NCBI RefSeq assembly: GCF_000315625.1
Contig: NW_005434626.1
Location: 445,448-509,447 of the forward strand
Source of the DNA: Guillardia theta CCMP2712
Lineage: Eukaryota > Protista > Cryptophyta
Length of the DNA stretch: 64,000 nucleotides
Direction: 5' to 3'
Made by a program: the position numbers and the translations under genes. The notes below the pieces were generated by a model that was not told the origin of the DNA, did not search any database, and was given only the letters and a program-made list of their open reading frames with translations. Of this stretch, positions 20,801 to 26,003 are shown in pieces. Within the stretch, counting starts at the first letter, position 1. Every line of letters starts with the position of its first letter.

Positions 20801-22220
20801 ATGACCACAGGTTTATATTCCATGTCCTGTGCGCCTGGACCTTGGGGAGGCGCCTTCATGCGCCCCGCCTTCGCTCCTTCCCCGGTGCTGGCAGGAGGAT
20901 CTTCTCTCAAGTTAGCTGGAGGAAGACGAGGGCTGAACTCCCTGAGCATGACGAACAAGGTGAGGGCTGTGGTCGGGGTCTTGTCCATGGGTAAGGTTTT
21001 ACGTACAGGTGTTCGTGGCTGGAGGGACGGGTAAAGTTGGTCGTATTGTTGTGAAGAGACTTCTGGAAGAAGACTGGAAGTATGTTTGACATATTACATT
21101 ATACTCGTTGTTGTCGTCTTGTTTTCTCATCTATCTCTCTTTGTTCAGGGTTGTCGCCATCGCAAGGAACGAAACATCAGACATAGCTCGCGAGCTGGCC
21201 AGCATGGGCGCAGAAGTTCGCAAGGTCAGACGTGGCATGTGATGATGGTGTTTGACATCTCTTCCTCTCAACCTCTTCTCTCCTGTCTCGTTGATACATG
21301 TCGACGCTCGCTGAGACGAAAACCTGACGCTAGTATCAGGGGGACGTTTGTGATCTTGAAGGACTGAAGGAGTGCATGAAGGGCTGCGAGTACGTCGTTT
21401 CTCTTGTTGGCTGCAGCCCTCCTCGATTTGTCAAGATCTCTGATCTATGGAGCGATCCTCGCAAAGACGCGAATCATCCAGCAAACGTTCAGTACCAGGG
21501 GGTGAAAAACCTGTTGGAAGCGTCAAAGACCGAGAATGTAAAGAAGTTCGTGCGGCTGACAGGGCTAGCAGTGGGAGCAAGCCCTTGGAACCCCGTCTCT
21601 ATCCTCTTTAGCCTTCTCCTTAGCTTCTCTACCTACTGGAACCGCAAGGGAGAGATGCTGCTGCGGGAAAGCGGAGTCGACTACAGTATCATACGCCCAG
21701 GAGGCTTGAAAGACGTCCCTCGGGCCAGGGAGGGGACAGACAAGCTCTTCCTGGCCAGCGAGGCCTGGGGAGACAAAACTCCTCCCTTCACTACCGGCAT
21801 CTCGCGCGCTGACGTGGCAGATCTCTGCTGCCTCTCCTTGACCGACAAGCGACTCTCGCGTGCGACCCTGCGGGTGAACAGGATGCGTCCTCCCACAGCG
21901 GACAACAACTACTTCGAAGACCCGCAGGCAAAGAGCACGTGGGAGGAGCTCCTGGATACGGTGAGGCGGCTCTTACAACGTTTCTTTACCTGTAAGTCTC
22001 ACACATCCCTTGTACCTCCTCCTCTCCCTCCCACCAGGTCGAGCCAGACAAGAAACCTCTCGAGGAAGTCGACTACACCCTCCCTGTCGGCCTCGCAGCC
22101 ACAGCAGGTTTGCTTCTTCCCTTCCCATCGTCTTCTTCTCTTCATGATGCTGCAGTTGCCGGGGTGCTCGGCATCGTCGTGGGCTGGGTCGCGAAGCTGG
22201 CTCTATCCTTGTTCGGATGA
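20801..22220 (+). CDS. Atypical SDR / NAD(P)-binding (NmrA/Tic62-like) protein with probable organellar presequence and C-terminal TM anchor
   Basis: Spliced NK|VFVAGGTGKVGRIVVKRLL, VVAIARN, GDVCDLEGL, VQYQGVKNLLEA, GEMLLRESGVDYSIIRPGGL, ISRADVA. Ends VAGVLGIVVGWVAKLALSLFG*. Start codon uncertain. Confidence 0.85.
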
Positions 22221-22271
22221 AGCTCCGTTGGAAAATCGCTCTTGGCGTTCATGATGAAAATTCTCTCCCTC

Positions 22272-24296
22272 TCAGCGTCCGATGAGGTTGCGAACTTTGA
22301 TGTACCGCATGTGCGACTGCGTGTTCTCCAGCGCCGCCATGGACATGAGGGTGAGGCGGACTTCGGAGATGTGGCCTTGTACGCCCAGCAGGACCGCCTC
22401 CTTGGTGCGCAGCCGGACGTTGACCGTGACATCTCTCCTGCCGAAGTAGTCGGAGAAGCTATCTGTCCCTGACATCTTGTCCGTGATCCTCACGATCTCC
22501 GTGTCGACGTCGTTCTTGATGATGTCAAGACACTTGCACACGCTTGCGATGTCGTCGAAGACCAGAGTCTGCCGGCAGATGTCACGAAGCCGCGAGACGT
22601 CGCCGCCGTAACATCGCACTGCCTTCTCGATCGCTCGAGTCTCGCTCTTTGTGTCCGCCCACTTGACAGACGATAGCATATCCTGGTACTTGCAAGCCTC
22701 CTCCCACAGCACGAAGGTGTCCTTTTCCGAGTTCCCAGCCAACGAGACGTATCCTCGTGACAGCATCGCCCATCGCTGAACCTTGGCAAGGAGGATGTAC
22801 TGCATGCTTGCTGCCTGCGCAAACAGCCGGTCGAGAGACAGCACGGCATTGCCAAATAGCGAGGAGTGCCATGCTTGCTTCCTCCAAACAGGAGGGGCGA
22901 CAGGGACTTCGATCTCCGACTCTACTGAGGTGTAGGACACCGACGTCCGAACCCGCTTTATCGAGTCCTCCTGCCGCGCACTCTTGTTCTGGCAGCTCTT
23001 GCTGATCTCCTTGGACATTTCCCGCAGCGAGTCGAGCTGCTCGTCCTGCCCAAGGTACTCCAACACGATCTTCCAACCGGCATCGTAACGAGCCTTGTCT
23101 TGCATCACGAGGTTCAGGCTGGTGTAGGTCACGTGAAATCTGTAGAGGAGGATGAACAAGCTTGCAAGCGAGACTATCAAACCGACTTTCACAAAATTGG
23201 GGTAAGACATCAGGAGCCCCAGCACCAGCCACCCGAAGAAGGTGAGGAGCGAAGCCGTCCAGTAGTACATCTCATTCTCGAAGAAGAAGATGATAACGAA
23301 CACGCTGAACGAAGAGAAGGCGAGCAGAAGCGTACTCGTCCGATTATCACGATCCATGTAGGCAATGAGACAGAGAGTAACCACAATAATCAAGATACCA
23401 TATTGCATCCAAATCTTGCCAATGTGCTCTCGCCTCAACAAGCCCAGCACAGCAGGTACACCGAGTGACAGAGTCCTCATCAACGCCATGAGAAGGATGA
23501 GAAGCATCTCTACACTCGGAGCGCTGAGATCGAAGCTTTCCACATAGTTCCTTGCCATGGAAGTGTTGTAGTCACCTTGGCCGAACTTGAAGATGGCAAG
23601 GTCGCCAGTGTTGACTGCCAGCAGATCCACCTGGTATTGCGAAGCCCCGATGATCGTCCATTCTTGTCTGTCGTGAGATCCAGAGACAGTGAAGGATGTG
23701 GGATCGCGTTCTGTCATGTTGTCAGATGTTATGAAATAGAAGCCGTTGCTCTGCACTGGGAATTCGTAGTCGAGGTTGATGGTACCGTTCTTGTGAACCT
23801 GATACTGACCGATCAAGCCGGGCTGTCTCAAGTCATGGACTACATCTCCTCCATCTCTCATCATTCCAAAGTGTTTGACGTTCGGGCTCCCGACTGACTT
23901 GTTCTCTCTCTCTCTCAGTACTGCAAACTTGAAATGGCGATATGTGGTGTAACCATTGTTGAAATACTTTCTTGTCCAAACTGTCGTCAACGAAAGATAC
24001 ATACTTGAGATGGCAAGCAGGATTAGGAGAAATCCTTTTCTGCTAAGCGCCGCTTGCATAGGCCGCGCACAGAAGAAAACACTTGCATCCGGCCCACGAT
24101 GCATGTTTTCTATGTAATATATCAATTTTGTGTCCAAGCTTACTCTCTGCTCCACAAGTTTGCGAAAGTACTTCCGCATAGCCAGACATCTTTTAGACCA
24201 GCATCTGTGAAGACTTTCGATAGTTGACAGCCTCTTTGACTGAAATGGATAGCGAAATCCGTGCAGAAAATCAACAAGTTCATGCTCGCCCGACAT
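22272..24296 (-). CDS. Intronless 674-aa multipass membrane protein: TM1, extracellular discoidin/galactose-binding-like domain, 5 TM helices, cytosolic RelA/SpoT-type nucleotidyltransferase domain
   Basis: Hydrophobic helices at aa ~89-107 and ~262-385. The loop has ERDPTSFTVSGSHDRQEWT and four N-glycosylation sequons. C-terminus has KSETRAIEKAVRCYGGDVSRLRDICR...GRRDVTVN...HISEVRL...HMRYIKVR. Confidence 0.8.
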   Translation of the reverse strand: MSGEHELVDFLHGFRYPFQSKRLSTIESLHRCWSKRCLAMRKYFRKLVEQRVSLDTKLIYYIENMHRGPDASVFFCARPMQAALSRKGFLLILLAISSMYLSLTTVWTRKYFNNGYTTYRHFKFAVLRERENKSVGSPNVKHFGMMRDGGDVVHDLRQPGLIGQYQVHKNGTINLDYEFPVQSNGFYFITSDNMTERDPTSFTVSGSHDRQEWTIIGASQYQVDLLAVNTGDLAIFKFGQGDYNTSMARNYVESFDLSAPSVEMLLILLMALMRTLSLGVPAVLGLLRREHIGKIWMQYGILIIVVTLCLIAYMDRDNRTSTLLLAFSSFSVFVIIFFFENEMYYWTASLLTFFGWLVLGLLMSYPNFVKVGLIVSLASLFILLYRFHVTYTSLNLVMQDKARYDAGWKIVLEYLGQDEQLDSLREMSKEISKSCQNKSARQEDSIKRVRTSVSYTSVESEIEVPVAPPVWRKQAWHSSLFGNAVLSLDRLFAQAASMQYILLAKVQRWAMLSRGYVSLAGNSEKDTFVLWEEACKYQDMLSSVKWADTKSETRAIEKAVRCYGGDVSRLRDICRQTLVFDDIASVCKCLDIIKNDVDTEIVRITDKMSGTDSFSDYFGRRDVTVNVRLRTKEAVLLGVQGHISEVRLTLMSMAALENTQSHMRYIKVRNLIGR

Positions 24297-26003
24297 TGAT
24301 CCGCAGTTCCCAGGGTGGGTCTGCTATCCCTTGTACAAAAATTGTCCAGAATGACTTGGTAGTTAATATATCCAGACTATGCTGCCCTCAAGAGAAAGGA
24401 AAAGGAGCTTCCCACCAACCCCTGCTTTTCTGTCATCAACATCCACTTAAGAAGCTCTCTAGACTGTTGTTGCGCAACTACCCTTCCTCTTGCTCGTTCT
24501 GATTGTTGTTTCTTCTCATTTCAAGCACAAATCCGATCGTCCTCATTGTTTGTTCGAACCGCGCTTGCTCTTTACTACAAAACGCAGGCTCTCCTCACCA
24601 CTCCATTTTGCCAGCAGCACCGCACCCACCCATACCCTCTGAACTAGAACACCCTACCCCGCCCCACCATGAAGATTTTAGTCCCCGATACTACTACACC
24701 CCCTTTCTCATGTCAGTACCCCTTCCTATTCCATACTACCCACCCCATAGTCATAACTTCTTGCGAGGGATTCATCAGAGACCCCCTGTTTTCCTATCCA
24801 AAAGGTAGGTCAGTTGAGACCCTACCACGGGACTCAGCTGTTATGTGAGGAAAACCACCCCAGTACCCCTCTTTCACCACACCCACCCTATGATACTACC
24901 CCCTCGACCAGACCCTCTAGGAAGAGGACCCAATAATGTCCTACAATGGTTAACATAGCCCTCATCCCCCCTCGTGAATTATCCATCCCCCAACCCCCAC
25001 CCCCATTTCTATCCCCAATCCTGGTACTGTAACCACCCACCCGACATGCTTACGGAGGTTTCAACCGACGCGGTTCGCGCTATCCCAGTGGTAAAAACTC
25101 TCAATATTAACTAAAACCTTGGGCATGTCTGCGACCCTTTGAAGTTTGCCAACTTGCCAATCGTTTCCAGTTCAGTCACTGCCGCGGAGCCCGCCGCCCG
25201 GCCGGGCACTGGCGGGCCGGTGACAGCCCGGCGGGCTTTCCGGGCCCGGGACGCCATCCCAGGAGTCGGCGGCTCCGGGGGTCCATCACGGCCGCCCGCC
25301 GCGGCGGCGCGGGAGGCTCGGCGTCACCGTGCGCGGCGCGGCGCCGCGGCACCGGCCGCAGCCCGGCCCGGCACCGCGCACCGTACTGTAGCACAGGCTG
25401 TGACTCAGCGGCGCCGCCGGGCGTTGCCGGCGCCGGGCTGGCACCGTCCGCACTGCACGGCCCGGCCGCGGTACGGTCAGTGATTCCGAGGCAGTGCGGC
25501 AACGGTCTGCCACCGGCGGTAACGGAGGCCGCGCTTCAGTTGGTAACTTTCAAGCGGCGGCGCCGGGCCGCGGTACGGTCACGCCGGCGGTCCGCCGGGG
25601 CAACCGTCCAACCGTTCGGATGCCATCAACTTGGCAAGTTGGCAACTTGATGCCGCGGACTCGGACGCGGCGGGTGACTGACCGTCAGTCACGAGTCGGA
25701 GCCAGCGACCGTGACCGTCCGACTCTGGCAAACGTTGCTGCCGCAGACCGGGTGCGGACAGAAGTTTGTGGTCAGCCTTCCGAAGCCACGGTGTATGTCA
25801 ATAAGTCATATCTGAGTGCGAGTCAACGACCGCTACAATGAAACAAGACAATAGCCTGTGTTGTTGACTGAGAGTGCAATCAGCCGCTGAGCTGCAGATT
25901 TAGTACAACTTGACTGAAGCAGATTACGGTGTCAGACAGGAAGGGAGCACTGTGAGCTTTTATATACTTCAAGGAAAGTATCGTAAGTTTATTTCCAAGA
26001 ATC

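Follow-up and report, generated by a model that had tools for sequence, protein, structure and literature searches.

The window analyzed here, a 64,000-nucleotide stretch of the cryptophyte Guillardia theta CCMP2712 (contig NW_005434626.1, positions 445,448 to 509,447 of the forward strand), carries on its reverse strand an intact open reading frame (ORF) of 674 amino acids. It encodes a membrane protein of receptor-like layout: a basic N-terminal region, one transmembrane (TM) helix, an ectodomain, five further TM helices, and a C-terminal domain with the predicted fold of a RelA/SpoT homolog (RSH) synthetase. RSH enzymes form the core of bacterial stress signaling and of several toxin systems. 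In eukaryotes, to our knowledge, only the plastid RSHs and the hydrolase Mesh1 have been characterized, and a few divergent synthetase-only proteins have stood unexplained since 2011. A receptor-type, membrane-anchored, eukaryotic form of the RSH synthetase is new; its architecture is well supported, and its function is something that we infer.

The ORF opens with an ATG, is far longer than expected by chance, and has a full-length ortholog in Hanusia phi with 82% identity. Transcriptome contigs from three independent studies (X1, X2, and X5) also cover a convergent neighbor gene and, because the GT..AG introns of that gene are spliced in them, are RNA-derived. They continue without a joint from 22037 to approximately 24615, which shows that the ORF is transcribed, has no introns, and follows a 5' leader of roughly 320 nucleotides; raw RNA reads (X20) cover the ORF too thinly to place the transcript ends. 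The intronless 674-residue ORF of the original prediction, which had been made from the letters alone, thus stands.

Hydropathy and an AlphaFold2 (AF2) model of residues 60-400, built on 18 homologs with a predicted local distance difference test score (pLDDT) of 87.8, give the layout listed in Table 1. They confirm the predicted series of one TM helix, a loop of roughly 150 residues (~147 in the model), and five more TM helices, and the four N-glycosylation sequons that had been read in the loop (NKS, NGT, NMT, and NTS) are present at residues 132, 170, 193, and 244. In the N-terminal region (residues 1-86) there is no signal peptide, no plastid presequence, and no Pfam match; the lack of a plastid presequence and of a hydrolase domain had been anticipated, and the signal peptide is likewise absent. 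A plastid-targeted RSH was considered and rejected, given that the protein has no signal or transit peptide and no HD domain. The C-terminal domain had been drawn from residue 545, and in homolog alignments its conserved part begins near residue 484 (window 22847), about 60 residues upstream. Directly after TM6, a juxtamembrane D-x-x-R-Y-D-x-x-W motif is kept across distant paralogs, and the linker to which it belongs is 87% identical to that of the Hanusia ortholog; from these alignments, the motif is a candidate for the element that couples the helix bundle to the enzyme domain. Foldseek and VIA searches with the residue 60-400 model were dominated by generic helical-bundle matches (TMEM45A, Z 9.2; rhodopsins and G protein-coupled receptors, Z 7-8), which lie below the meaningful level for helical proteins.

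Single-sequence searches of the window protein and its parts found nothing meaningful in Pfam, NCBIfam, or the PDB. An exhaustive sequence search collected 1172 representative relatives at E <= 1e-3, and a 40-sequence alignment of the C-terminal domain (A1) served as the family profile. Its consensus reads K...RAIEK..R, D.CRQ.IVF, GYRD, H.CEVQL, and GH.RY, and against the PDB the profile matched Tas1 (6OX6; E 4.9e-4) and YwaC/RelP (6FGK; E 0.03) with the basic motif, the Asp, and the GYR aligned. It also reached PF04607-annotated proteins, which carry a Tas1-type signature, at E 1.7e-32. PF04607 itself gave weak, sub-threshold matches in 16 of the 40 family members, the best paralog scoring 25.4 bits against a gathering cut-off of 27.

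Structure comparison points the same way. An AF2 model of residues 480-674 reached a pLDDT of 89.3 and a predicted TM-score (pTM) of 0.85, and its best 50 Foldseek matches are RSH synthetases throughout, led by Tas1 (E 2e-5). VIA-align matched it to RelP (6fgk, Z 13.1 over 150 residues at 3.0 A; 6ewz, Z 12.8), RelQ (5dec, Z 12.3), Tas1 (6ox6, Z 11.9, 21% identity), CapRel (Z 11.0), and FaRel (Z 5.9). The top 11 rows contain RSH synthetases only (Z 13.1-7.8), with the next non-RSH fold at Z 6.8, and Atlas structural clusters agree. As modeled, an alpha/beta nucleotidyltransferase fold of the small alarmone synthetase (SAS) type spans the whole C-terminal domain, and it is specifically the RelA/SpoT synthetase fold, not that of nucleotidyltransferases in general. 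A structural match was the condition on which the RelA/SpoT-like assignment had been made to depend; Foldseek and VIA-align both supply one, and the family profile agrees. The likeness to RelP and RelQ that had been drawn is right in motif order, and the nearest characterized relative is a different enzyme, the (p)ppApp-synthetase toxin Tas1.

The nearest PF04607-labeled relatives of the algal family include two short metagenomic proteins with the Tas1 signature, namely P0249, which has an apparent N-terminal signal peptide, and P0246, which has a low-complexity leader rich in Lys, Thr, and Pro. To judge from their sequences, these are possibly exported or secreted bacterial synthetases. Atlas neighbors of the RSH-like domain include eukaryotic clusters, with some records from Bacillariophyta and Ciliophora, and clusters fused to tetratricopeptide (TPR) or ankyrin repeats, which hints at soluble repeat-linked versions outside the cryptophytes.

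The sidedness of the protein follows from helix count, from its relatives, and from glycosylation sequons. The AF2 model has six TM helices. Many long relatives carry the TM-ectodomain-TM cluster-RSH unit twice in tandem, with exactly one hydrophobic segment between the first RSH domain and the second ectodomain (e.g., P0007, P0010, P0011, P0022, and P0023), and a single TM segment at this place puts ectodomain and RSH domain on opposite membrane faces. Across 101 ectodomains, sequons number 175 against 95.6 +- 8.7 in shuffles (z 9.1), and in the RSH domains they are depleted (120 against 152 +- 11.5; z -2.8). The ectodomain excess persists after thinning to <40% identity (102 against 61.3; z 5.9; 0/500 shuffles) and to <30% identity (z 4.4), and the ectodomain of the window protein alone has four sequons against 1.39 expected (P 0.037). 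Together with the lack of a signal peptide and the requirement for ATP, these observations support a cytosolic RSH domain opposite a sequon-rich ectodomain that would be extracellular or lumenal, at the plasma membrane or an endomembrane. The original prediction had placed the enzyme domain in the cytosol on the strength of six TM helices; helix count, tandem relatives, and sequons uphold that placement and do not put the domain in the lumen or outside the cell.

The reverse orientation, with the RSH-like domain facing outward or into the lumen in the manner of a bacterial exported alarmone synthetase (EAS) and the beta-sandwich in the cytosol, is very improbable. Exported RSH enzymes do exist (8vx3 is among the structural matches; PMC12691689), and the charge around TM1 does not fix the orientation. 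Yet the excess of sequons is confined to the beta-sandwich, with a deficit in the RSH domain; an 86-residue basic N-terminus instead of a signal peptide precedes TM1; and ATP is available in the cytosol. We rejected the outward-facing synthetase on the sequon distribution.

The ectodomain is modeled as a 10-strand beta-sandwich (residues 117-256). Its DP..F.V.GS.D...W motif (residues 198-213), which the original prediction had taken as discoidin-like, is present and lies in the stretch over which CBM32/F5-8-type modules align with the ectodomain profile. Against the PDB, this profile matched accessory modules of a GH92 mannosidase (E 0.006) at a DP..W.L.GS.DG..W motif, and one VIA row links the residue 60-400 model to a glycosidase accessory domain (6eon, Z 7.2). 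In the Atlas, feature scores of 0.87-0.89 and structural TM-scores of 0.54-0.67 over the part lead to clusters rich in F5_F8_type_C, and the named matches are mostly F5_F8_type_C, NedA-like, and Sad1_UNC or galactose-binding-like. PF00754 gave sub-threshold matches in three of 18 homologs (best E 0.008) and PF22633 in one of the 18; the window ectodomain itself matches neither. Eukaryotic discoidin domains have a flanking, disulfide-bonded pair of cysteines, and there is no such pair here, as residues 107-260 contain no cysteine. The motif stands and discoidin membership is weakly indicated: the ectodomain is probably a sandwich distantly related to the galactose-binding-like group, it is not established as a discoidin domain, and it probably binds carbohydrate or another ligand.

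Active-site conservation was counted over 209 unique family domains. K550 is retained in 208, R554 in 203, K558 in all 209, R575 in 208, R621 in 202, and H642 in 190; counts for D572 and E645 are in Table 1. The six predicted ATP-, Mg-, and base-catalysis residues (K550, R554, K558, R561, D572, and E645) are each kept in 175-209 of the 209. In FaRel2, R64, K66, S70, K74, and R77 bind the ATP phosphates, D90 binds Mg2+, and Tyr128, in the G-loop, keeps the acceptor base in place (PMC11782079). D572 lies 11 residues after R561, the ligand spacing is identical to that of FaRel2 (K66/S70/K74/R77, D90), and the YwaC alignment agrees. The near-invariance of these residues argues that the family is enzymatically active, insofar as sequence can tell. 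All five motif assignments of the original prediction fall on family-invariant columns (K550/R554/K558/R561, D572, G619-R621, E645, and H662/Y665), but its equation of GRRD with GYRS hides the replacement of the acceptor-base Tyr by Arg.

At this G-loop position, family domains carry Tyr in 171 cases, Phe in 21, and Arg in six, the window protein being among the six; it departs from the family consensus also by K605T, N606D, and Q647R. Y-to-F at the G-loop is a routine catalysis-impairing substitution, which impairs the toxic SAS (toxSAS) enzymes FaRel2, PhRel2, and FaRel (PMC11782079). Proteins with two units often have F, H, M, C, or K in place of the Tyr in their N-terminal RSH domain and retain the Tyr in the C-terminal one, a loss that suggests regulatory, non-catalytic copies. 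These substitutions lend some weight to the idea that in the clade of the window protein the RSH-like domain is a pseudoenzyme, which would catalyze no transfer and would serve to bind ATP or a ligand resembling an alarmone, or to dock or dimerize, perhaps with Tyr-bearing paralogs. We consider this unlikely. The phosphate-, Mg-, and base-catalysis residues are all kept, and the RSH domain is the best-conserved region of the protein (90% identity to the Hanusia ortholog, against 76% for the ectodomain and 67% for TM1). Moreover, the Arg-bearing sequences form one clade in a quick tree (Shimodaira-Hasegawa-like approximate likelihood ratio test [SH-aLRT] 92) with two separate Guillardia-Hanusia ortholog pairs, so the Arg is an old, maintained state. 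Arg620 thus probably reflects altered acceptor recognition more than decay, with reduced or absent catalysis as the alternative.

The window gene is one of many. Six-frame searches of the G. theta genome gave at least 84 matches to the RSH-like domain and, from a single query, at least 19 to the ectodomain-TM module, and every paralogous locus inspected (32 + 20) encodes the TM-ectodomain-TMs-RSH unit, single or in tandem. Sensors of the Venus-flytrap or periplasmic-binding type appeared in none of the latter 20 loci. In 98.8% of 4272 unit pairs the ectodomain is more diverged than the RSH domain (median identity 22% versus 38.5%). The named carriers are all cryptophytes (Guillardia, Hanusia, Hemiselmis, Chroomonas, and Cryptomonas paramecium), and many other relatives come from metagenomic or Logan contigs. 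These proteins are a large lineage-specific expansion with tandem arrays. Two-unit members lie at loci L036 (C206), L034 (C30), L038 (C5), L044 (C49), L047 (C67), and others, often as head-to-tail or inverted gene pairs. Two relatives of about 1960 residues from metagenomic or Marine Microbial Eukaryote Transcriptome Sequencing Project (MMETSP) data, P0051 and P0122, carry an ADP-ribosyltransferase toxin-type domain (PF01129/PF03496) and leucine-rich repeats (LRR_6) ahead of the TM-ectodomain-TMs-RSH module, a conflict- or immune-style fusion. A six-frame search of the genome with PF04607 found only two canonical long RSH genes (C47:131263-132737 and C24:131220-132315), presumably plastid enzymes, with HD_4 and RelA_SpoT above Pfam cut-offs; theirs are the only HD_4 domains in the genome.

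The neighbor gene, which converges on the receptor gene, encodes an unrelated NAD(P)H-binding protein (PF13460/NAD_binding_10, E 2e-15). Assemblers fuse the two genes into one contig, which indicates that, within a few bases of the receptor stop codon at 22272, the 3' end of one gene overlaps or adjoins that of the other. One run shows an alternative intron in the neighbor (Table 1).

Table 1. Coordinates of the receptor gene, its predicted protein features, and the convergent neighbor gene in the window (aa, amino acids)
Feature	Window position	Strand	Basis
Complete intronless ORF, 674 aa; stop codon 22272-22274	22272..24296	-	ORF list, ortholog, transcript contigs
Approximate 5' leader; RNA-derived contigs end at 24581-24617	24297..24615	-	Transcript contigs
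N-terminal region, predicted cytosolic, aa 1-86; basic (15 K/R vs 8 D/E)	24039..24296	-	Hydropathy, charge count
TM1 / signal anchor, aa 87-113	23958..24038	-	Hydropathy and AF2
Ectodomain, aa 114-260; beta-sandwich, 4 N-glycosylation sequons; probably galactose-binding-domain-like (F5/8 type C / CBM32-like)	23517..23957	-	AF2, profile, sequons
Five-helix TM cluster TM2-TM6, aa 261-399 (helices aa 261-286, 290-314, 319-338, 342-363, 366-399)	23100..23516	-	Hydropathy and AF2
Linker, predicted cytosolic, aa 400-483; conserved motif, then Ser/Glu-rich stretch	22848..23099	-	Homolog alignment
Juxtamembrane D-x-x-R-Y-D-x-x-W motif, aa 400-419	23040..23099	-	
RelA/SpoT-synthetase-fold (Tas1-like) domain, aa 484-674	22275..22847	-	Profile, AF2, structure search
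Predicted ATP-phosphate-binding basic motif K550-x3-R554-x3-K558-x2-R561	22614..22649	-	Family alignment; FaRel2 spacing
Asp572, predicted Mg2+-binding catalytic Asp	22581..22583	-	209/209 in family
Arg620, G-loop position (Tyr in 171/209 family domains and in characterized RSH synthetases)	22437..22439	-	Family alignment
Glu645, predicted catalytic Glu of the EVQL/EIQI motif	22362..22364	-	203/204 aligned
Neighbor gene, NAD(P)H-binding protein	21007..22250	+	
Neighbor gene GT..AG introns	21079..21149, 21222..21338, 21959..22037	+	
Neighbor gene alternative intron	22103..22152	+	Seen in one run

Direct support exists for the gene, its transcription, its fold, the conservation of its catalytic residues, and the opposite sidedness of ectodomain and RSH domain. 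Upon these we infer ligand control, pyrophosphokinase activity, the product, and the kind of output, whether messenger or defense. The reading that we favor, by a modest degree of confidence and from sequence and models, is a ligand-regulated, cytosolic, ATP-dependent pyrophosphokinase of the Tas1 type coupled to a glycosylated sensor. A ligand would bind the fast-evolving ectodomain on the extracellular or lumenal face, and the signal would pass through the helix bundle and the conserved juxtamembrane linker to switch the RSH-like domain. This domain would bind ATP-Mg through K550, R554, K558, R561, and D572 and use E645 to move the beta-gamma pyrophosphate onto the 3'-OH of an acceptor. Across the family, this acceptor would most likely be a purine nucleotide and the product of (p)ppApp or (p)ppGpp type; kinship with Tas1 favors adenine nucleotides. 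In the clade of the window protein, where a conserved Arg replaces the acceptor-stacking Tyr, the domain probably has a changed acceptor specificity or weaker catalysis.

Whether such an enzyme would serve messenger signaling or act as a defense or suicide effector is close to evenly balanced. Routine expression without a partner and a cyclase-like tandem with one degenerate copy are compatible with regulated signaling. The fuller proposal, that cryptophyte cell-surface receptors answer extracellular cues by making (p)ppApp/(p)ppGpp-type nucleotides in the cytosol or by pyrophosphorylating RNA 3' ends, is put forward tentatively, as one that may well prove wrong. A defense or self/non-self effector, as opposed to a reversible messenger, is a possibility of similarly limited probability. 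Recognition of a foreign glycan or surface would then unleash a toxSAS/Tas1-like activity, and ATP depletion via (p)ppApp or pyrophosphorylation of the tRNA CCA end would arrest or kill the infected cell, as is thought for CapRel and for the effector domains of fungal nucleotide-binding leucine-rich repeat receptors (NLRs). The nearest characterized relative is a toxin, and the structural matches also take in CapRel and FaRel2; the large lineage-specific expansion, the tandem arrays, the fast divergence of the ectodomain, and the fusions in P0051 and P0122 fit this picture, as do the absence of a stand-alone hydrolase from our searches and the report of RelA_SpoT as a fungal NLR N-terminal domain. 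But large, fast-evolving families are equally typical of ordinary sensory receptors, and the window gene is transcribed in ordinary cultures in three studies and has no recognizable immunity partner.

Several observations weigh against the regulated cytosolic pyrophosphokinase itself. The window protein has no match to PF04607, and every family member tested falls below its gathering score. The positive-inside rule is undecided at TM1 (mean K+R 1.84 on the N side versus 1.81 on the C side). A search of the genome for a stand-alone HD-type alarmone hydrolase came up empty, the PF13328 matches being the two long RSH genes only, and an off-switch for a messenger is thus not evident. Finally, the window protein combines Arg at the G-loop with K605T, N606D, and Q647R, when Y-to-F alone impairs toxSAS enzymes (PMC11782079).

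The broader picture is of a eukaryote with dozens of expressed, selectively maintained genes that join a Tas1-like synthetase to a glycosylated, fast-evolving ectodomain via a six-helix membrane block. This makes two questions testable: whether 3'-pyrophosphorylated nucleotides are put to use in eukaryotic cytosols, and whether receptors can signal through an RSH fold in the way that they do through cyclase and kinase domains. Should the receptor-messenger reading be true, these proteins would represent a new class of receptor-enzyme in eukaryotes and the first eukaryotic alarmone-type signaling beyond organelles; should the output be toxic, they would represent eukaryotic surface immune receptors of a new type, made from a bacterial toxin domain. 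Either outcome would extend alarmone biology beyond bacteria and plastids.

A full-text literature search on RelA/SpoT with Guillardia or cryptophytes found no description of the receptor family. Recognition at the level of the domain is not new, since UniRef automatically labels the paralogs GUITHDRAFT_121009, 121010, and 113149 and Hemiselmis proteins "RelA/SpoT domain-containing protein". The plant and algal plastid enzymes RSH1-4 are of the same superfamily, as are the two long Guillardia genes. These long RSHs have PF04607 above cut-off and a hydrolase domain, whereas the receptor family is invisible to PF04607 in six frames and has no hydrolase domain, signal peptide, or plastid presequence. 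Atkinson et al. (2011) listed unplaced synthetase-only "divRel[S]" proteins in fungi, Dictyostelium, and diatoms and did not mention membrane forms (PMC3153485). Compared by description, these proteins and the fungal NLR RelA_SpoT domains are likewise non-plastid, eukaryotic, uncharacterized, sporadic, and equipped with the synthetase-like domain only, but neither a TM receptor architecture nor a large expansion has been described for them. Exported bacterial synthetases are a recent addition, and all other characterized RSHs are stated to act in the bacterial cytoplasm (PMC12691689).

Among bacterial enzymes, RelP and RelQ (SAS2 and SAS1; 6FGK, 6EWZ, and 5DEC) share the fold over about 150 residues (Z 12.3-13.1) and the motif order of basic ATP motif, Mg-binding Asp, G-loop GYR, catalytic Glu, and H..Y. 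They differ as soluble homotetramers that make (p)ppGpp and lack membrane or sensor modules, with identities of 15-17% and a first motif of R-x-K-x3-S-x3-K versus the algal K-x3-R-x3-K. The tRNA-pyrophosphorylating toxSAS enzymes (CapRel, Z 11.0; FaRel, Z 5.9) are alike in structure, the FaRel2 ATP/Mg ligand spacing is identical, and they offer the RNA 3' end as an alternative acceptor, in line with the RNA pyrophosphorylation that the original prediction had considered; CapRel and FaRel2 are, however, bacterial or phage toxin-antitoxin effectors controlled by a pseudo zinc-finger domain (pseudo-ZFD) or an antitoxin, elements that the window protein lacks.

Tas1/Apk1, the (p)ppApp synthetase toxin of the Pseudomonas aeruginosa type VI secretion system (6OX6), is closest, being the best profile and Foldseek match and the one with the highest identity (21%) among the structural matches. 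It shares with the algal family a K-x3-R-A-x-E-K ... Y-x-G-D ... D-x-x-R signature, absent from canonical SAS enzymes, and the metagenomic Tas1-signature proteins P0204, P0246, and P0249 have GYRD and EVQ motifs as in the algae. Both the Tas1-signature proteins and the algal family have the G-loop Tyr where the window protein has Arg. Tas1 is a secreted, soluble bacterial toxin domain with an immunity protein, in contrast to the eukaryotic, integral membrane, ectodomain-bearing algal protein; neither secretion delivery nor a cognate immunity protein applies to the window gene, which is nuclear, encodes a membrane protein, and has an unrelated NAD_binding_10 neighbor. In design only, the receptor nucleotide cyclases (the trypanosome receptor adenylate cyclases and the 6TM-C1-6TM-C2 adenylyl cyclases) are a parallel. 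These are unrelated in catalytic fold and chemistry and share no homology, but in them, too, an ectodomain or TM block that varies is linked to a cytosolic domain that converts nucleotides, and they too repeat a 6TM-catalytic unit in tandem with one copy often degenerate, as in the C1/C2 asymmetry.

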